A DNA stretch of 62,935 bases, filler included, from Reticulomyxa filosa (GCA_000512085.1; 21 parts of 21 records of this genome joined end to end with filler, not necessarily neighbours in it); one strand, 5' to 3'. Positions 1-10,798 are shown, counted from the whole stretch's first letter. The notes: a model not told the origin generated them from the sequence alone. Program-made: numbers and translations.

Positions 1-1919
1 TTTTTTTTTTTTAAACAAATACCAGAATTTCCAAATAACTCCTTCAGAGTATCCGATTTCATTCCATATTTCAATTTCCTATTGAATCCTTTAGAACTAC
101 AATAGGCACCATCACAAGTTTGAGAATTTGCTTGCTGCATCTTATTTTGAATAGCAGACAAAAGTTTTAAAGCTCCTGTTTGCCTCTTTTTAGTTGCAAA
201 ATACGAACTTAGAAAAGCAGAACTTTTTTTATGAGCCTGTGTTGAGTATAGCATTTCTCGATTACGTCTGCAAAGAATATATTCAACCTCACTAATGAGT
301 GAGGGTACTGTACTGTATCTTTATTGGCCGGTTAGCCTTGCCAACGGCTTTCTTGTTAGCACCTCTCCCGATAAAAGATTGTTACAGCGCTTGCCTCAAA
401 ACTTAGAAAGTTTATGCCGACGAAAGCCCAAAAATAAATTGCAACAAGTACGTTGTCATATTGTAATAAAAGTGCTTAAAGCAACACGCTACTCACAATA
501 TTACAAAATCCAATAACTATAAAAAATCTTTATCTTTATATCACTATAAAAAAAATTTTTCACTAGTTGAAATTTCTTCGGATTTTGTATTGCGATTTCT
601 GGTCAGTTTGAAAATTTTCTACTTTCAGGATCTTTCTATATTTTTCGAAATATCTAGTTTGTATTGCTTTGCTTTCTAGATCTTGCTAATCTTTCACGAT
701 GATCGTCGATGATGATTTTTTTTTGCTTCTTTTTCTTGCTAGCTTTTCTTGGTACTTCAAAATTCTTCCCGAAGTTTTTGAAAGATTAACATTTGAAATT
801 TTGCCACAAGAACGTTCAAGATGTATACGATCAATTCTGGAGTGAAACAGGAAGAGCAGGCATACTAGAGATTTGTAAATTAATCCAATCAATTCCAAGT
901 TTTATGTTATGAATCGTGTTGGATTGAAATCAATTGTCCTGCTTGCAAAAAACAATTGTTTATTATAATGGGCAAGATCAAGATGAAAAACCAGTCCCAG
1001 TTTTAACATTTAATCTGTGATCATTTGAAGAAGAAGTTGCTGTCACAATGAATATTTTAGAATATATTGTCATTTGTCTGCCTGGTTGGATACCACTTGT
1101 GGAGAATAGCCTTTACACAGACAAATTGAAAACATTCAGAAGAGGTCAAACTGTTGAATTACAAGATATAAGCAAGAAGCAGCAACACTTAAAAGAAAAC
1201 TTCGTCAAGAAAAACAAAAATACATAATCAAAAGTATTGAATCGTTGAAAGAAGCAAATACGAGGCAGTTTTTCACCAGTTCAAGCAAATGAATTCAACA
1301 AGATCACTGTTATTCCATCAATAATATCTACTAGCTCCAATGATGTGGCCAAAACAGATTCTGAAAAAGCCGTACTATTAGTTGTTTAAACATCTCATCA
1401 ACCACCAAATTATTCAGAAGAAATTTTATATCATTGTGAACTAGTTGCATCAGATAATGAAACGAATAATTATCATTTATTTGATATAACTGAAGAAAAA
1501 ATTATTGAAGCATTTATATTAAATCTCACAAGTACATACAATATTTACGATCAAATACTTAAGCGTATTGGACAATCAATAGTCGAATCTTGGTATTCCT
1601 ATTCAATTGGAGTTTAAGATCCAATAAAAATAACAAATGTTCTTAAATGAATTTCCTGCAAAATTTCAAATATTGATCTACCAAATTAGCTTCAAATCTT
1701 AAAAGCTTGAAGAATCTTGACTTTTCTAACTGAATCCATTAAAAAAAAATATTTTTGCAGTAAATTGAAAATGATAATGAAATTGACTATATATTTTTTT
1801 AAAATAGTAATACGCTCAGTACCACTTTCATGTAATCACTATGCAAACATATCACTTACAACTGATTCAAAACAATATTTTCAATATATATTCTGTGATT
1901 CTGCTGCTATATTCAATTT

Positions 1920-2200
1920 GTGTAAATATATATTCTGATATCATATGCGAACATAACTGAATCAACAATATCATTTATATACAACATGAATAACATCTTA
2001 TGCAATAGTCATTTTGTTACACTAATTTTAAATTCTTTTACTAAATTAATTCCATTTAATATACTTGACCAATTCGATCTTTGATTAAGCTATATAACCA
2101 CCAATACATTTTTCATTTAAGTCTATAAATAATAATATTTAACATTTAATTATAAACAATATTATTTTATGTCATATGTATAATTTTCCTTGTGTTTGAT
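1920..2200 (-). mobile_element. Decayed non-LTR (LINE-type) reverse transcriptase relic
   Basis: Minus strand reads LK*KMYWWLYSLIKDRIGQV../LNGIN..KEFKISVTK*LLHKMLFMLYINDIVDSVMFAYDIRIY. This follows the LINE RT consensus order (W..SFL..R.q.V, GVPQG, LF.lYiND, FADD), with stops and frameshifts. Confidence 0.6.
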
Positions 2201-2751
2201 TTAATAATTATTTATTAATTAACTATTATATCAATATGTTTGTTGTTCTTTATAATTTGTAAATACTATGTATTAGTGCTTTCTATATTTACGATTGTTT
2301 CTTTTAATATAAGTTAGTCAACATTAATTATATAATATCGTATTTCTTATATTATTTAACATAAATATAATAATAATTATATTTATTTAATATTAAATAT
2401 TGTTCTAATACAAAATTTTTTCATAAACTACAACTTGAAAATATAATTTACATATATATAAATAACTTAGTTTTCAATTTAGCTATTTTCAATTTGTAAA
2501 CTTTATAATAAACAGTAATTATCTTTTAATAATTTCGTTATTGCATCTTGTACCCAATTGACAATAATTCGTTATCTTGTCTTATTACCGTTTAAAAAAT
2601 ATAATATTACAAGTTCTTCGAAAAACTTGATATATATCTATCTTGATATAGTAAAAGGACTTTTACTCTTCAAAACAAAATTAAAATATCGTTACTGAGT
2701 TAGTTGATAATTAATTGCCATTGTCTTAATAATTGACTTATTATTGATATT

Positions 2752-4976
2752 TTACAAGTTAGCACGCTTATGATATTGTAAGTGTATTAAATAGATGCAC
2801 GCATGACTTGTTGAATATTATCATTTTTTGCTTTTTCAAAATATTGTTGTCGTTTATTTGCTTCGTCCTATTAAATTTTGTGGAATTGTAACTGTTTAAC
2901 ATTTTTGAAAGAAGAAAAAAACTTACCAATCGAGTTCGGATCTGTTTGTCTCTATTCATAAGTTCAATCATTAAATTTGTCTTCGCTTCAAACATTGTTT
3001 GATTATTCATTCCTTCTTTTGACAATTCATTATCATGGCTTTCTAATGTGTGTTTAATCTTTTCTTGAGTGACATCGAATATCTTCATTTCTTGTTCAAT
3101 ATTTTCGACATCTCTCATTGCGCGGTTCCATTCTCGTTCAAAAATATATTGTTTAGAAAGTAACTGTCCAATGTGTGGACCTATTTTCCGCTTGATATTT
3201 TTATAATTGTCCTTATTTTCATTTACTATTACTTCAATTTCAATATCGTTTTCATGTTTCAAAGGAATAATTGTTTCCTTAGGATTGCTTACTGTTAATA
3301 TCGACCCATCTAGTAATGATTTAAATGATTCTAGCTCTGGGCCACTTCTGATAGTTATTGACGATTCAGGATTTAGTTGAAAGAAGTCATTTAAAATTGG
3401 CTTTATTCGTATGTTTGTTATTGTTTTTGGTTTGTTACAAAATAATCATTTTATTTTTTTTGCTATGTGGTAACTTAACGGGATTGCGTTGAACGAGAAG
3501 CCCGTCGTTGTAAAGAGATTGAACAACAGAAAAATCTCCTCCGAAAACCACTTGAGATACTTCTTGCGCCGTGGACTCGACAGTGCGGCTAAAGAAATCG
3601 AAGTTTAGCCATTGCAATGCTGTTTTTATCGGTTCAGTGGACAAGCCTGAATGTTTATCGTTGTTTTTGCACTGCAAATATTGATCCGTCATTTGTTGTT
3701 GTAATGATTGCCAAAAGTCAGCTCGTGCCCAATCGGATATAACACTTTTACTTTGTCTGTTTCTATACCATTCCACACGTCTGGATTTGATGTCGGACCA
3801 TCCTTTGTCAAAATTGAATGTATCCTTGTCTGTTTGTTTATATTGTGAACGTGATGCATAATGTGAATACATAATTGAAAAAATATATTCAAACCTTGTA
3901 GATACAGTTGCGTCAGTTGTTGAAAACAGCTGTTAATGTCTTGCATATTTGTTCGACAAAACTGAATAATATTGTACATTTGATCACTTGTAAGCTTGAA
4001 CGCACCTTGGTGCTGTTGATTAAATGTATCGACACAGTGCTTCAAATAGTCATTGCTCTCTATCTGTGAAGACAACTGACCGATCCACAGGAAATTGGTC
4101 GCGGTCTTCATTGGACGAGGGCCTTCTGTCGTTAGTGCCAATATACAATGACTCAGTTGATACTTGTAAGTCATATCGTTCACCAATTCCAACATAGGCG
4201 CGTTTTCCAAGTTGTCAAGATTGTCTAGTACCACGATTGGCATTTCTCCTGTTTTTGTTACAGCCATTCTGTTGTTGTTTTGGCTTGCCAAAATACAACA
4301 CTGTTTGTTTTGTAAAGAGATCAAATACTTGACTGTGATGTCATTTCACATTCTAGTATCCTCATTTGGTCGATCCAATGATTGTACAGCCATTGCTCGT
4401 AGGTCAATCCGTTTTGTCCAATCCATTCATGTATTCGTCGTCGATACGTGGTCAGCCATTCTGGTAGTTTCATCGTGTCTTCCATTTGTTTTGCCAAGCT
4501 TTTCTTTTGTTATGTTTGTTATTTGTTTTGTTTTTTGCCAAAGGCCTTTGGGAAAAGCAAAGACATACTTGAGATGCCAAATCAAAACGAAAACAAGGTA
4601 ATTGAAGTTTGTGCAAAGCATAAACAATGGAATGCGTTTTACCAAATCCAGAGGGAGACTCTACCAAAGTGATGGGACATTTGGAATTGTTTTTGTTCAG
4701 GACATTCACAAAAGCTTGGTCAAGGGTCTCACGTTTGAAATGATTCTGTTGTTCTTTCGCTTGCTTCAAGTTTTCCTTTTGTCTTTCGATATCCAATTGA
4801 AGGTTACGCCAGCTTTGATTGTACACTTGGCTTGAATATTTGTGCACGCCAAAAATACCAACCATGCACGATCCACAAATGGTTCCTATCTTGAGAAGGT
4901 TGTTTGATCTTGTTATTAGCATCAATGTGATGCAAAAAAAAAGCATGCAACATACTAGTACTCGCCCGGAAAGCAT
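2752..4976 (-). CDS. Multi-exon P-loop NTPase with N-terminal hydrophobic segments and C-terminal coiled coil
   Basis: Walker A-like LVESPSGFGKT (ORF 4470-4976) and Walker B-like PIVVLDNLD (ORF 3689-4324). GT-AG introns near 4568, 4330, 3894, 3480 and 2925 join ORFs 4470, 3689, 3435 and 2768 in frame. Confidence 0.65.
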
Positions 4977-5158: not shown

Positions 5159-6450
5159 TCAAAGTTTGACAATCTTGGCAATGAAAAAGCCACTTGTATT
5201 AGACGTAACAGGGTCAAATCGCAAACACCTTTTGAGCAAGTCATTGCGATTGATGACATGACCTGGTTTGAATAGGCCTTTTCCATCTACTGTGGAGAAC
5301 AGTGGATGTGCTGTCAAATCTTCAATTCTCATTTCTGATTTATGTCTATGATACAACCAATCGATTACAAACTCATTTTGCAATAAATCAAAAGAACAAG
5401 TGCAATAGACTAGGTTCCCATTGCTTTTCAAATTTTGAAAGCCCGTTTCAATCAACTGACATTGTAATTGAAACGTATCATTTCTCTTTTTATCGTTCAA
5501 ACATTCATTGAAAAATAAAGTCCATTTCCATTTTTTTTTTTGTAATATTTTTTGTGAACATTACGAATCGAGCCATCACTGGTGCACTCGCTATCGACAA
5601 TGACTTTGTCGTATCTATTTGTGTTTTGTGTCTTTGTCTTTGTTGTCTTTGGGCAATCCTTTGCGGACTGCAGCGTTCCGACCACCTTTCTTCTTTTGTT
5701 TGGTGGATAGGGGATTTTATCATCTTCAATTGTGTCCTTTTTTGACGTGGGGTCCAATGACAATTCGATTTCGAACATAGATTTGGTTTCATCCTTGGTC
5801 TGAGGTGGCTGCCTATCAAATTGGGTCCCATCCATGCACATCAAACGAATAAGGAAATTGCTTGCTACTTTATTTTTATTATCGGAGTCGTGGCAAGTGC
5901 TTTCGATTACATGTTTGCGATACTTTATTAGCAAAGATTGGCACAGTTGAATGCGATTTGCATCGATGTCGACACCAGTGATCGTCCCTTTGCATTTCAT
6001 CAATTGAGACAAGTACAACAGCTTATTCCCAGGGGCACAGCATAAATCTAACACATGGTCCCATGGCTGGACATCCAACAACTGACAAGCAATTCCGCTC
6101 GTTATATCCATTCCCAATATTTTTTGTTGCTTGTAACACGACAATTGGCACACATTCAAAATATTTGGAGATATTGACAAAAAGTCTTTCAGAATTTCAC
6201 TATGCTTTATTTTTATCTCACCACCTTCAATTGATGATTGTGCGCGCCCATCATTTTTCTTCTTGTTTGAGAGCAAGCTCTCCTGGAGTTCCTTTGATAT
6301 TTCTTCTACCGAGACAGGATTGTAAGGGTTCACACGAACGTAGCGAGGTAACTTGAAAAAATGAAAATAAACGTCTGGATTAACATGGTTTTCTCTCAGA
6401 AACAATTCAAGTGAATTAGGATTTTTTTGCTTAGTTTTTATTTTTTCCAT
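5159..6450 (-). CDS. NOL1/NOP2/Sun (RsmB/NSUN) family RNA m5C methyltransferase, apparent frameshift in the run at 5531-5541
   Basis: VLDLCCAPGNK (SAM binding), GVDID, DKVIVDSECTSDGS (motif IV Cys), LVYCTCS (motif VI Cys), SGFFIAKI. Correcting the A11 run gives KYYKKK-WKWTLFFNECLNDKKR and joins the two ORFs. Confidence 0.9.
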
Positions 6451-7369
6451 AACTTGGAAGACGAACAAAACTGAGTTTTGTGAAACAAGTCCTGTCCCTG
6501 TGTTAGCACTGGGCAGAATCGTATATTTTTTGATGCAAATGGAAATGTTATATTCTAAAAACAGTTGAGTCCATTATTTATTACAATGTAGCTGGAAATT
6601 TTCAAGACCATAACTCTTGAAGTGAAAAACAAATCTGATTTAGTGTTTCTTTTTAAAGGCAATATTTGACTGCGAGAATGATCACGATGAAAAAGATTGA
6701 GTGCAAAATGTAAAATCTTTATCGCTTTGTTTTATTTTAAGTACAACATTTTTTTCCTTTCCAATGTTATTAACTAAATGCATTTATCTTATTTTGTTTA
6801 TTTATTTATTGCTTATACTTGATAATTGGAACATGCATTATCTAATACAGAATAGTTTCTGTTTTTGTGCTAATCAATAGCCAGATACTTATTTGACTTG
6901 TATACACTTAAATATAATATTTGCGTAATTTGATACATTCAATGTCTTCCAATAATGACAATCATAAACTTCTTTATTATTGTAATCTAGACTATGAACA
7001 TGACACTAAATATTATTATTAATTCCAAATTTCCTTCATTTAGTTTATACTGTTCTGCTTCGCAATTGATACTCAATTGAAGAGTTTAATGAATAGATTT
7101 AACTTTTGCTTCAAACACGATTCTTTTGTTTGTTTGTAGAGATAAAATTGTGTTCAAAAATACAATGCCAATCATTTCACAAATAGATAATGATCCAACT
7201 CAAAATGCATCTCACAGTCGAGATAGCAAAATAATATTGCTTGAAATGAAAAATCTCAAGCCATGAAAAAAAAATGAAAACAATTCCTCACAGATGTGTG
7301 GCAAAAGTAAGTTTGTCAAAGTGAAATATTCGAAATCATACAAAACAAAGAGATGATAAAGCATGAGAG

Positions 7370-10009
7370 CTAAATCAAGTCAATTTGCCGTTCTTTCAGT
7401 AAACCTAATACTTTAGTGGAGAGGTTTAGGCGCAGGGCCATTTCGGAAGGAGTCTCTCGAAGCTAGGAAGTGCAGACAGTACGTTTCTTGTGTAGCCGAA
7501 CAAAAAAAAAGAAATTAAAAGCGTAAATACCTTGGCACTGTTGGAGGATTGGAGTAAATCGTTCCATACGGATATGGGCATGAATTTGCGTAAGCAATTG
7601 AGCCTAGATACATCATTTCCCTTTTTATTTGCAACAGCCAAATGAATAATATTGCATCCTGGCATATTGCTGTGATTGGTGGTAATCAGCCTCCAAAATG
7701 CATGGTTGTCTTTTTCGGAAGATTGTGGGATCAAAATGGAAACCATTTCATCGTTGATTTCAGACGATAAATAGAATGCAGACATTAATGGAACATGTCC
7801 GTACTATTCAAACAATCAACATCGATTTCTAGGGATAGAAATGTAGGAAGGCCAATGATAATGTCAACAATACCTTGTCCCGGACATCGAGTAACTTTTC
7901 CCACGATTCCTCGGGCATGTAACTTTTGAGTATTTGAAGACGGCTTAAAGCGTCGGGATGGTGATTTTCGACTGTCAAGTGAATGATTGTGGATCCGTCC
8001 TATTCGCATTGGAGACAAAACAATTTAGAAATAAGGCTTGTGATTTATGTTGGGTGTTTGTTTTTTTTTTCCTCTAACTGATTTATTGTTGGTCGTCTTC
8101 TCCCAAAAATCGGTATTGAAAGCATAGTCTTCGGGAATTAAATACAGCATGATTTCATCGGTAATCCTTGCTTGTTTGTACGCGGTGTGTAACAACGGTG
8201 TGTAGCCTTGCTATTGTATATTTTACATTGCACATATATGTACTGTGTGCGATGAGACGTGTATGGACATGATACAACAATACAATCTATTAACATATGT
8301 TTCTTGAGTGGATATGAATTCCTGCCATTTGATCTCGCTGATTTTGCTCTTCAGCAGTTCGAGTAAAGACACGAGCAGGACTTTTTGGTTGCGGACTGCA
8401 AATTCGAGAAGTGAGGCTTCATCCTTTTTTAAGTTTAAAAAAAAGTATAAATATAAATATAAATATAAATATAAATATAAATATAAATATAAATATAAAT
8501 ATAAATATAAATATATAAAAAAGAATTGAATTGTTATTCGAGTATTAATAAAAGAAATACTTCTTCAGTGTGACTCCAAAACGATTCATCGGCGTCAAAA
8601 GGATAAAAAGTTCAATGGCTTTCATAGAAGTTTGTTTCCAAAGCGCGTAGGTCAAAGCGCAGTTGTCTTCGACATTTCTTTCGAGCAGTTGTTGCTGGAC
8701 GATATCTTGGGGGATCAAGACTTGCAGCAGCTCTTGAGCGCACTGATACTCCATGGCGGCGCTGTAGGCGATGTTGGTGACAAAATTGCTTTCGCTGTCG
8801 TCTTTAATGACTTTGACGTAATCGGACTTTGCAAACTCCAAAGGATAACGCAGCATCAATGGACATAAATGTCGACTATTGAAGCAGGCGAGTTTGAGTT
8901 GGAAGTCGAAATGATTGAAGAGCAGTTGTTCGTAGGATCCTTGTCGAAAGGACTGTTGTCGAATAATTTCATAGAACTTTTGCTCTTTGATCTTCCAATC
9001 GTACATTTCCTTCCACAGGAACTCGACTTCGCAAATGATACTCTGCATCCACTCCAGATCGGTGTAGATGACATTGAATTTGATGTCCCTGTAGCCCTCG
9101 GGGATGGTGTATCTCTTCTGCGCAGATGTGCGTTTGTCATAGGCCTTGGCAGAGTCCTCGTCATTGACGAAGCTGTTCTTGACACGCATCAGTTCGAAGC
9201 GATCAGAGCTGTCCCGTAAAAAGTCTTTGAATTTGTGCAGACCGAGCAGATAGTCGTCGAGCGTGTCAAATGTGGCCGTGCAGCGCACCAAGTCCATCAA
9301 ATGGGCGGACTTTGGGAAGCGCTCGTTGGCATACTCGCTTTGCACTTTTTGCTTGCAACTGTGATGACTCTTGATAGGCGCACGCGAGTATTTGCAGGTG
9401 CCGCCGCATTCACGAAAGAACTTGCGCATTTCGGATTGAAAGCCCTCGTCCATGTCGTGTGCACGTTGAATGAGTTCGGTCAGATAGATGTCAAAGTCCC
9501 ATGCATACTTGGAGTTGTACGAGTTGCGACTGTAATTGGCGGCAGTGAAGTAGGACGAGTTGGAAGACAAAGAGTTGGGAAAGGAGGAGGAGGAGGAGGA
9601 AGAGGAGGAGAAGGAGGAAGAGAGGGAAGAAGACGCAGAGGAGGAAGAAGAGGCATAGGGAACTGAGAGATTGCCAGAGTTGTGAGTGTGAATGGACGGA
9701 TCTCCATCGTAGCCCGTGCAAATGCTTCGATAATCCAATTCCTTTTCATCTTTAATCTTTGATTTCAATCCATATCGACACTTGTCTTGTCTCCAATTTT
9801 TTTTTTTATCTTTGCCCAAATACTCGGAATGAATCATTTCATTGCAATGAAAGTTGCAAATGTCTTCAAATACGAGCTCGTGTTCGATTATTTCCTTTTC
9901 CAGTCGTCTGCGCAATCCCTCTACCTCCTTCTTTGTCTGTTCTGTACACAGATCTACTACTTCACGCCATTTCAATCGTGACACTTTCCATTTTATCATG
10001 CTTTCAATC

Positions 10010-10044
<35 letters not shown>

Positions 10045-10728
10045 TCTGTAGTCATCATTATCATTATCATTATCATCTTCCTCTTCCTCCTCTTCCTCTT
10101 CCTCATCCTCCTCTTCCTCATCTTCTTCATCCTCCTTCGTCGTCTTTTCTTCACTCTTGGTCTCATTCGCCTGCCTATGGTCCACCGTGTCCAACCACAC
10201 CACCATCTGTCTGTCGTTCAACACATGCTCTTGGATCCATTCCCAGTCACACGGATTGCTATTCAATGTTTCGATGTTCAATAGTTGTTTGCACTGACAA
10301 AACAACGCCTCCCACACAAATTGGGGTTTAAATAAATAACACAAGTTATATACGTCTTTGCTCAATAATTTGCGGTCTTTGATCATTTCCACTATCACAT
10401 CACACAGCGTGTTCATCACCACTTCAAACTCATTCCCGTGACGTGTCTTCAAGTAGTGTAATAGCAATTCCATCTTTGATTTCTCTTGCGAGATTTGGAT
10501 GCCATAGTCTCTCATTATTTTTTTGTTTTCGTCCAAATACTGAGTCGATATTAGCACTTGGATTGCCGCTTCGTTTTGCATTACAATCGCACGGTCCAAT
10601 GCGCTTTGGATTTGATCGTCGCCGATTTCGTGTCGAATGTCCGATGTCAACAAATACCGTAGACATTGACAATTATTCGATGAAAAGGGATACACCAAAT
10701 GTCCTAAAATGTCCATCTGTTTATTCAA
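7370..10728 (-). CDS. Ankyrin-like repeat protein with central RelA/SpoT-synthetase-like nucleotidyltransferase domain (5' end probably lost at the spacer)
   Basis: 727-aa ORF with APIKSHHSCKQK / MDLVRCT / RVKNSF / GYRDIKFNV / ICEVEF at about 9020-9385. Downstream exons (about 8300-8424, about 8085-8212, 7874-7999, 7531-7803, 7370-7462) encode GYTPLLHTA, GSTIIHLTV, GHVPLMSA, GCNIIHLAV and ETPSEMA ankyrin-like units, ending at TAG 7370. Confidence 0.75.
8446..8518. repeat. (ATAAAT)n hexamer microsatellite inside an intron
   Basis: About 11 tandem ATAAAT units; they produce the spurious KYKYKY ORF. Confidence 0.9.
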
Positions 10729-10766
10729 ATGTATCCATTGTTATTGCATATTACATATATATATAT

Positions 10767-10798
<32 letters not shown>

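Follow-up and report, generated by a model that had tools for sequence, protein, structure and literature searches.

Can a nucleotidyltransferase of the RelA/SpoT type form part of a eukaryotic protein with ankyrin-like repeats, and if so, what would it do there? The question is raised by a gene of the foraminifer Reticulomyxa filosa (GCA_000512085.1; 102 Mb in 50,809 contigs), most of which lies on contig C1239. This contig is included in the stretch of DNA analysed here (the window; 62,935 nucleotides, filler included), where the gene is on the minus strand. A preliminary description, made from the sequence alone, had read positions 7370-10728 as a host gene for an ankyrin-flanked RelA/SpoT-like enzyme. 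In a structural model the domain, very divergent in sequence, does have the fold of the RelA/SpoT homologue (RSH) synthetases, and the gene belongs to a family spread across the Foraminifera. That it encodes an ankyrin-flanked enzyme of this fold, with a putative ATP-dependent pyrophosphoryl transfer gated by the repeats, seems on balance probable.

Fold, motifs and relatives of the domain

All five motif strings of the preliminary description are carried by one minus-strand open reading frame (ORF) of 727 codons (8545..10728), to which residue numbers refer throughout. The RSH-like nucleotidyltransferase domain covers residues 399-623 (about 225 amino acids; 8860..9534). An AlphaFold2 model of this domain, built on an alignment of 91 homologues, reached a pLDDT of 89.2 and a pTM of 0.83, while the single sequence alone gave an unusable model (pLDDT 38). 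The top 44 chains found in the PDB by Foldseek were all RSH synthetases, with E-values down to 4e-6. Re-alignment with VIA yielded Z 14.9 for RelQ (5ded; 150 residues, root-mean-square deviation [rmsd] 2.9), 14.8 for SaEAS (8vx3), 13.6 for RelP, 12.5 for CapRel and 11.0 for Tas1 (20% identity); Pol lambda and Pol mu scored about 11, over only about 110 residues. An exhaustive search of 48,161 representative chains, independent of Foldseek, placed RSH proteins in its nine best positions (Z 14.3-10.3), followed by the first other nucleotidyltransferase at Z 9.9. The modelled domain has the RSH synthetase fold, its RSH matches spanning 150-162 residues with best Z scores of 13-15. The RelA/SpoT assignment is thus borne out at the level of structure, with no sequence-profile match beside it.

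The five motifs, previously located at about 9020-9385, are found at 9022-9378 on the minus strand (APIKSHHSCKQK at residues 450-461, MDLVRC at 478-483, RVKNSF at 515-520, GYRDIKFNV at 545-553 and ICEVEF at 565-570). In the alignment of the 91 diverse family homologues the only invariant columns are K461, D479, R482, N518 and E567, the presumed metal-binding Asp and catalytic Glu thus being present in 91/91; near-invariant columns of the same motifs are P451, K453, R457, Y466, R515, K517, Y546, D548, K550, N552, Q569, H583, Y586 and R590. Because the motifs coincide with these columns, they represent the conserved core of a real family and not a chance occurrence.

Counterparts of the canonical RSH residues, known from RelSeq, RelQ and RelP, were set by alignment and motif order, not by residue-level superposition. 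Motif 1 (P451-K461, PIKSHHSCKQK; 9346..9378) is a basic helix aligned to PIKSRERAMQK of Tas1 and would correspond to the ATP-phosphate-binding helix of RSH enzymes; its family state is P-x-K-x-x-x-R-x-x-x-K (K453 99%, R457 97%, K461 100%), of which K453 and K461 are retained here and R457 is a serine. Motif 2 (D479..R482, DLVR; 9283..9294), invariant in 91/91, is placed like the RSH metal-binding Asp, and aligns with DiGRF of a second R. filosa family that itself aligns with DLARN of Tas1. Motif 3 (R515-F520, RVKNSF; 9169..9186) has the form R-x-K-N (R 99%, K 99%, N 100%), a likely counterpart of R-x-K-D-Y-I, and its columns are paired by hhalign with EDKDfF of the second family. Motif 4 (Y546-N552, YRDIKFN; 9073..9093; Y 96%, D 98%, K 98%, N 99%) lies in strand 4 (E151-159 in the model) and would replace G-Y-x-S-x-H. 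Motif 5 (E567-V-E569; 9022..9030) appears to hold the counterpart of the catalytic Glu of E-x-Q-x-R-T, with E567 in 91/91 sequences and Q569 in 85/91. A helix motif, H-x-x-Y-x-x-x-R in the family, reads Q583-F-x-Y586...R590 here (8959..8982), with H583 changed to Q. All six are on the minus strand.

Compared with RSH enzymes, the family retains the basic ATP-binding helix, the Asp...Arg strand, the Glu-x-Gln strand and the His..Tyr helix. The acceptor side differs family-wide, with R-x-K-N-G-F for R-x-K-D-Y-I and Y-x-D-I-K-x-N for G-Y-x-S-x-H, and of these RSH motifs only R, K and Y are kept. An earlier argument that substitutions point to a different acceptor or product is partly wrong: the GYRD-type change is family-wide, but EVEF is private to this gene and its closest paralogue (on contig C23538), the family consensus being EVQF.

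By sequence, a word-indexed protein search returned only the query protein, and a PDB search with a profile of 16 paralogues gave no match. The sole PDB sequence match of the family profile is Tas1 (E 1.5, 26 residues), at its K-S-x-x-R-x-x-x-K helix. The family also aligns with the second R. filosa RSH-like family (hhalign E 3e-5, probability 73%, all motifs in register), which matches Tas1 at E 0.011. Both the Tas1 match and this bridge are weak, and they agree with the fold result. As had been noted before, HD, TGS and ACT domains are absent from the ORF in Pfam and NCBIfam searches. Fusions to ankyrin and TPR repeats occur among the ESM Atlas clusters that neighbour the model in shape; diatom, ciliate, ascomycete and phage clusters are also among these neighbours, some annotated as RelA_SpoT.

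Within the same genome the domain (residues ~399-623) matches 68 places on about 55 contigs, at 29-75% identity. An exhaustive HMMER search of 1.84 billion representatives gave 478 clusters at E<=1e-3 and 178 at E<=1e-10. All named members are Foraminifera (R. filosa [RFI_*], Bolivina argentea, Nonionella stella and Elphidium margaritaceum), the remainder being MMETSP transcripts and scaffolds from Tara Oceans or other metagenomes. On one Tara scaffold (1495-4004) a called gene with faint ankyrin matches lies immediately upstream of member P0045, which suggests the same architecture there, the gene having been divided by the gene caller or interrupted by an intron. No description of either family was found in the literature on Reticulomyxa or foraminifera with SpoT, alarmone or NACHT, and the Tas1-homologue lists of PMC12691689 have no Reticulomyxa entry. 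What appears to be new is the family itself, with its motif variant, its ankyrin-flanked arrangement and the number of its members in Foraminifera; the fold was known before, and so was the general notion that eukaryotic proteins with repeats can carry an RSH domain.

The second family emerged in a search of the R. filosa genome with PF04607 (RelA_SpoT), which matched 93 places, about 15 of them reaching the gathering score; the family accounts for at least 90 places. In one full-length example (C10557, 100-5679, minus strand) a single ORF of 1860 codons has an RSH-like domain at its N-terminus, followed by a NACHT NTPase (36 bits), pentapeptide repeats and some 16 WD40 repeats, and the best PDB sequence match is, again, Tas1. 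This layout is NLR-like, by analogy with the fungal NLRs reported to have RelA_SpoT N-termini. The two strongest PF04607 matches are of another kind, being RSH fragments of canonical bacterial type that lie, together with HD_4, on tiny contigs. Bacterial-type long RSH fragments with HD_4 and/or RelA_SpoT matches (49-175 bits) are seen on C8583, C32270 and C7084 (492-885 bp). The assembly has HD_4 matches on three tiny contigs and nowhere else; bacterial-type RSH synthetase sequence is present on two of them as well. These fragments very probably come from contaminating or associated bacteria.

Splicing of the gene and its ankyrin-like repeats

Exons downstream of the domain were first predicted from reading frames and GT..AG sites, then compared with contigs of one public run (X1), which are 90-95% identical to the window, as expected of a related strain or allele, and whose RNA nature is presumed. 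The X1 contigs omit exactly 8424-8560, 8211-8294, 8000-8078, 7804-7873 and 7463-7530, all GT..AG introns on the minus strand. One contig of 497 nucleotides starts with 76 nucleotides of the large exon, contains exons 2-4 and continues into exon 5, and a second connects exon 5 with exon 6. The ankyrin-like exons are therefore joined to the exon with the RSH-like domain, and the separate transcript that the preliminary description had allowed for them is not what these contigs contain. In the in-frame exon parts, 33 of the 39 listed differences between X1 and the window are synonymous, so the frames used are coding and under purifying selection. This is a spliced, expressed nuclear gene of R. 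filosa, and the earlier case for a host gene, made from introns and poly-N/E/S tracts, is upheld on both counts (the 727-codon ORF includes acidic, poly-N and poly-S tracts).

The large internal exon (8561..10716) comprises the N-terminal ankyrin-like helices, linkers, the RSH-like domain and the first C-terminal ankyrin-like units; the X1 match starts at 10716 and splices out from 8561. An intron of 137 nucleotides with a TATAAA-type microsatellite follows (8424..8560; X1 joint 8422/8560, cut +1). A phase-0 donor for this first intron at 8575 (GGA/GTCACA) was ruled out, since the X1 contigs use the GTATTT donor at 8560. Exon 2 (DEASLLEFAVRNQ...; 8295..8423) is ankyrin-like, is bounded by X1 joints and is collinear with paralogues P0002, P0008 and P0039. 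Beyond an intron of 84 nucleotides (8211..8294), the ankyrin-like exon 3 (QGYTPLLHTAY...; 8079..8210) is given by the prediction, the X1 joints and paralogue collinearity alike; beyond one of 79 nucleotides (8000..8078), the ankyrin-like exon 4 (DGSTIIHLTVENHH...; 7874..7999), also delimited by X1, aligns with P0018 794-827 inside a Pfam Ank_2 match of that protein. An intron of 70 nucleotides (7804..7873) precedes the ankyrin-like exon 5 (7531..7803; X1), which holds two units (YGHVPLMSAF... and GCNIIHLAVANKK...), and one of 68 nucleotides (7463..7530) separates it from the last coding exon (LRETPSEMALRL...; 7370..7462; prediction and X1). The stop codon, TAG at 7370-7372, is where it had been placed, and an X1 contig continues past it into the 3' untranslated region, to 7335.

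The other limit first assigned to the gene, 10728, is not its start. X1 leaves the window sequence at 10716, just after an acceptor AG at 10718-10717, with a loose end of 255 nucleotides whose first 30 match contig C27856 (35-64) with one mismatch. There, an exon ending at 35 (...SDVFHHYRYS) with a GT donor joins window position 10716, and the upstream exons of the gene occupy 35-190 and 205-687 on the minus strand of C27856, with a possible start ATG near 675, in a frame that is open further upstream; Pfam finds no match in these exons. Because the continuation of X1 matches an exon with a GT donor on this contig, the 5' end of the gene lies outside the window. The 3' end of the upstream intron (10717..10798) includes a TA/TG microsatellite within which C1239 terminates, probably the cause of the assembly break between the two contigs. 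The two microsatellites, at 8435-8526 (TATAAA-type) and 10740-10798 (TA/TG), are both intronic.

At 8601..8604 the assembled sequence is one base short of the X1 contig, which has an extra base behind 8602, and the assembled ORF is out of frame downstream. Only with this base is the junction of the large exon and exon 2 (donor at 8560) in frame, in phase 0. Only the shifted frame (...ELFIPFDADESFWSHTEE, continuing across the junction as DEASLLEF...) reproduces the paralogue pattern 'LFIP....FW', so the assembled ORF has left the proper frame for its last 14 sense codons. The break is either an indel of the draft assembly or a real frameshift in the sequenced strain; the contig of the closest paralogue (C23538) is also frame-broken, which hints at an assembly error.

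Ankyrin-like units had been predicted on both sides of the domain, and both predictions hold in a qualified form. About eight long units (some 42-45 residues each) follow the domain over six exons, and their ankyrin character is indicated by collinearity with paralogues and by the ESM Atlas, not by Pfam. The five downstream exon peptides, each searched singly, have no Pfam ankyrin match; they are collinear with paralogues, exon 4 falling inside the Pfam-significant Ank_2 stretch of P0018 mentioned above, and all named ESM Atlas clusters nearest to the exon 5 peptide are ankyrin (0.95-0.96). Before the domain, an ankyrin-like region at residues ~5-175 (10204..10716) includes a sub-threshold Pfam Ank_2 match at residues 17-62 (E 0.008, 17.1 bits against a cut-off of 27.3). 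This region is 50% identical to P0003 54-223, and P0003 has Ank_2/Ank matches above cut-off at 63-116, within the stretch aligned to it. Ten of the 16 full-length homologues scanned (P0003, P0013, P0018, P0020, P0026, P0028, P0079, P0089, P0107 and P0127) have Pfam-significant ankyrin repeats before and/or after the domain. Judged by homology and by likeness of features, the repeats in the window resemble bona fide ankyrin repeats. The term 'ankyrin-flanked' is right for the family; in this gene the repeats are degenerate.

The neighbouring gene (5159-6468, minus strand) encodes an RNA cytosine-C5 methyltransferase of NSUN/RsmB-F type and consists of two ORF pieces meeting near 5500, at a small intron or an indel. 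Further along (2768-4976, minus strand) there is a run of ORFs that overlap one another, each 145-211 codons long and one of them containing a P-loop-like GFGKT string; they have no Pfam match and are probably exons of an uncharacterised gene.

Catalytic state and possible role

Three near-invariant positions are changed in the window gene: R457S (97% R in the family), Q569E (93% Q) and H583Q (93% H). It is the only sequence with E at 569 among the 91 aligned. The same three changes are found in the closest paralogue (C23538, 858-1701, minus strand; 75% identity), and none of the 15 other aligned R. filosa paralogues carries all three. That paralogue also has an intron-like gap in a variable loop and a frame break near 1028. 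Comparison of the sequences indicates that EVEF, R457S and H583Q are derived, and that a subclade of two genes, under purifying selection, has retained them. Since they are limited to two genes, the changes speak of a subclade with altered or lost catalysis and not of a family-wide change of product. Catalysis by the window gene and its closest paralogue is probably altered or weakened.

For the family as a whole, the chemistry would most likely be an ATP-dependent pyrophosphoryl transfer to the 3'-OH of a nucleotide or of an RNA end, the nearest solved enzymes being small alarmone synthetases. ATP-Mg would be bound through the basic helix and Asp479, and Glu567 would activate the acceptor 3'-OH. 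The protein would begin with the N-terminal exons on the other contig and continue with ankyrin-like repeats, low-complexity linkers, the RSH-fold domain and about eight further ankyrin-like repeats. These repeats would most likely act as a binding or sensor module: they would recognise a ligand or partner and restrain or position the enzyme, much as the sensor of CapRel and the repeats of NLRs do. Activity, product and a sensor-effector or defence role are proposed here by analogy. Given the expansion and rapid divergence of the family, and the NACHT-WD40 family as its sister, the most attractive role is that of an effector in conflict, defence or allorecognition, and the existence of at least 90 NACHT-WD40 proteins with a related RSH-like N-terminus favours the effector-module interpretation.

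Several observations weigh against an active, repeat-gated RSH enzyme. PF04607 is absent from the ORF, from 16 paralogues and from the 91 family members, even at E<=10; NCBIfam finds no RelA_SpoT match in the ORF or the domain, and PADLOC finds none; an hhalign comparison with a long-RSH fragment of canonical type, taken from a contaminant contig, gives a probability of 0.3%, and the Tas1 sequence match alone is not significant. The acceptor-side motifs are unlike those of RSH enzymes, and a common fold does not show a common reaction. Three near-invariant residues are missing from the copy in the window, whose assembled reading frame is interrupted at about 8602. For its own repeats the evidence of ankyrin character is indirect, with no Pfam match above threshold, and X1 is only guessed to be RNA and, at 90-95% identity, is not from the same strain or allele. 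HD_4 alarmone hydrolase was not found in the eukaryotic part of the assembly, leaving a reversible messenger cycle without a visible partner.

A weakened or non-catalytic variant is, for this gene, a serious alternative. In its full form, where the window gene and its closest paralogue are pseudoenzymes whose RSH fold now serves for binding or regulation (as a decoy or nucleotide sensor, for instance), it seems to us possible, if distinctly short of probable. R457S, Q569E and H583Q strike 93-97% conserved positions in the counterparts of the ATP helix, the E-x-Q strand and the following helix, and their presence in C23538 too, with purifying selection, fits a retained non-catalytic function; yet the five invariant residues are intact, including the presumed metal-binding Asp and catalytic Glu, and one further R. 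filosa paralogue has Ser in place of Arg, while three have Gln. Were the domain instead an ordinary (p)ppGpp synthetase with a stringent-like housekeeping task, a cytosolic counterpart of plant and algal RSH, this would agree with best structural matches that include the (p)ppGpp-making RelQ, RelP and Rel. Such a role is very improbable, as the ORF is without HD, TGS and ACT, the guanine-side motifs G-Y-x-S-x-H and R-x-K-D-Y-I are not kept, no HD_4 hydrolase partner was found in the eukaryotic assembly part, the highest identities among the structural matches are with Tas1 and SaEAS, and dozens of fast-diverging, repeat-fused paralogues are unlike a single housekeeping regulator.

It could also be argued that the RSH likeness reflects the superfold only, and that the domain belongs to a different nucleotidyltransferase class (Pol-beta/TENT/CD-NTase-like, or an RNA nucleotidyltransferase like MenT) and transfers NMP, not pyrophosphate. 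Pol lambda and mu, TdT, GLD-2 and CdnE do match at Z 8-11, and no profile places the domain among RSH proteins by sequence; these matches, however, span only about 100-120 residues against 150-162 for RSH and fall 3-5 Z units below the best RSH match in the exhaustive search, and the family has no G[GS]...DxD signature of Pol-beta type, its one Asp and one Glu being placed as in RSH proteins together with an RSH-type basic helix. We regard this explanation as very improbable, a shade more so than the housekeeping one. Chance motifs in a low-complexity ORF, or bacterial contamination, might be suspected from the long low-complexity tracts and the lack of any Pfam or NCBIfam match, and were rejected as virtually untenable: the family is deep and conserved, the confident model has RSH as its best fold, introns and spliced transcripts occur in an AT-rich eukaryotic context beside an NSUN gene, and the bacterial RSH pieces are on separate tiny contigs.

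If the ankyrin-flanked RSH-fold proteins are active, the chemistry of alarmone synthetases ((p)ppApp, (p)ppGpp, tRNA pyrophosphorylation) extends to eukaryotic cytosolic signalling or defence, and the family offers a natural set of sensor-gated RSH enzymes for study, as well as a profile by which many 'hypothetical' foraminiferal and marine metagenomic proteins could be annotated; if inactive, it exemplifies a pseudoenzyme scaffold on a large scale. In a bolder version, speculative and rather unlikely, Foraminifera would have recruited a Tas1-like high-turnover RSH pyrophosphokinase as the common 'warhead' of two repeat-gated families (about 50 ankyrin-flanked and at least 90 NACHT-pentapeptide-WD40 copies in R. 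filosa). On sensing infection or non-self cytoplasm, the proteins would exhaust ATP by converting it to (p)ppApp, or would modify tRNA by pyrophosphorylation, and thereby put a section of the syncytial network out of action, with the R457S/Q569E/H583Q subclade as a catalytically altered regulator or decoy. Were this true, a eukaryotic innate immunity or allorecognition system would be built on alarmone-synthetase chemistry. To our knowledge, eukaryotic RSH-type synthetases outside plastids are barely known, being represented by RelA_SpoT annotations on some fungal NLRs, for which we found no biochemistry in the literature. Here a protist lineage has hundreds of RSH-fold genes that standard annotation overlooks, wired to repeat or STAND modules like immune receptors.

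Comparison with known systems

The best overall structural match is with RelQ/SAS1 and RelP/SAS2 (5ded, 5dec, 6ewz, 6fgk; Z 13-15 over 150-161 residues, rmsd 2.7-3.3). Like them, the R. filosa domain is a single-domain synthetase core without HD, TGS or ACT, and the basic helix, Asp strand, Glu-x-Gln strand and C-terminal helices come in the same order. Identity is only 12-14%, however, with no profile-level sequence match, and the guanine-binding motifs G-Y-x-S-x-H and R-x-K-D-Y-I are replaced. RelQ and RelP are, moreover, free homotetramers, whereas the R. filosa domain sits inside a large eukaryotic repeat protein encoded by an intron-containing nuclear gene. With the plant and algal long RSH proteins (RSH1-4/CRSH) and metazoan Mesh1, the common point is the eukaryotic setting of an RSH superfamily member; the former are plastid-targeted long proteins with HD, TGS, ACT or EF-hand domains and the latter is hydrolase-only, and none of these domains is present here.

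The highest sequence identities among the structural matches are with the toxSAS-type synthetases Tas1/Apk1 (6ox6; 20%, Z 11.0) and SaEAS (8vx3; 16-19%, Z 14.3-14.8), and Tas1 is the only PDB sequence match of both foraminiferal profiles, at PIKSRERAMQK...DLARN. These enzymes are extremely fast, make (p)ppApp, or (p)ppApp and (p)ppGpp, and act outside ordinary stringent control (PMC12691689). Tas1 is a bacterial toxin delivered by the type VI secretion system (T6SS), with an immunity protein, and SaEAS is Sec-exported; the R. filosa ORF has no T6SS/PAAR delivery domain or signal peptide. Nor is there an immunity gene, the neighbouring gene being one for a methyltransferase of NSUN type, and the domain lies between ankyrin repeats.

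CapRel (7ztb, 9erv; Z 12.2-12.5) is a fused toxin-antitoxin tRNA pyrophosphokinase of anti-phage defence. It combines an RSH-fold effector and a sensor/inhibitory module in one chain, and could serve as a functional model for the gating of an RSH toxin domain by a repeat or sensor domain. It differs in being bacterial, in its identity of 9-10% and in its sensor, a small pseudo-ZFD antitoxin domain and not ankyrin; PADLOC has no match here.

A eukaryotic comparison is offered by fungal NLRs with an N-terminal RelA_SpoT effector domain, which a preprint lists among the N-terminal domains of NLRs (bioRxiv 10.1101/2022.03.16.484565, citing Dyrka et al. 2014). The window ORF differs from them in having no NACHT or NB-ARC, in the central position of its RSH-like domain, with repeats on both sides, in that this domain is unseen by PF04607, and in its lineage, Rhizaria and not Fungi. 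It shares with them a eukaryotic, lineage-expanded combination of an RSH-type domain with repeat arrays (ANK, TPR or WD40), and their layout is exactly matched by the second R. filosa family, with its RSH-like domain, NACHT and WD40 repeats.

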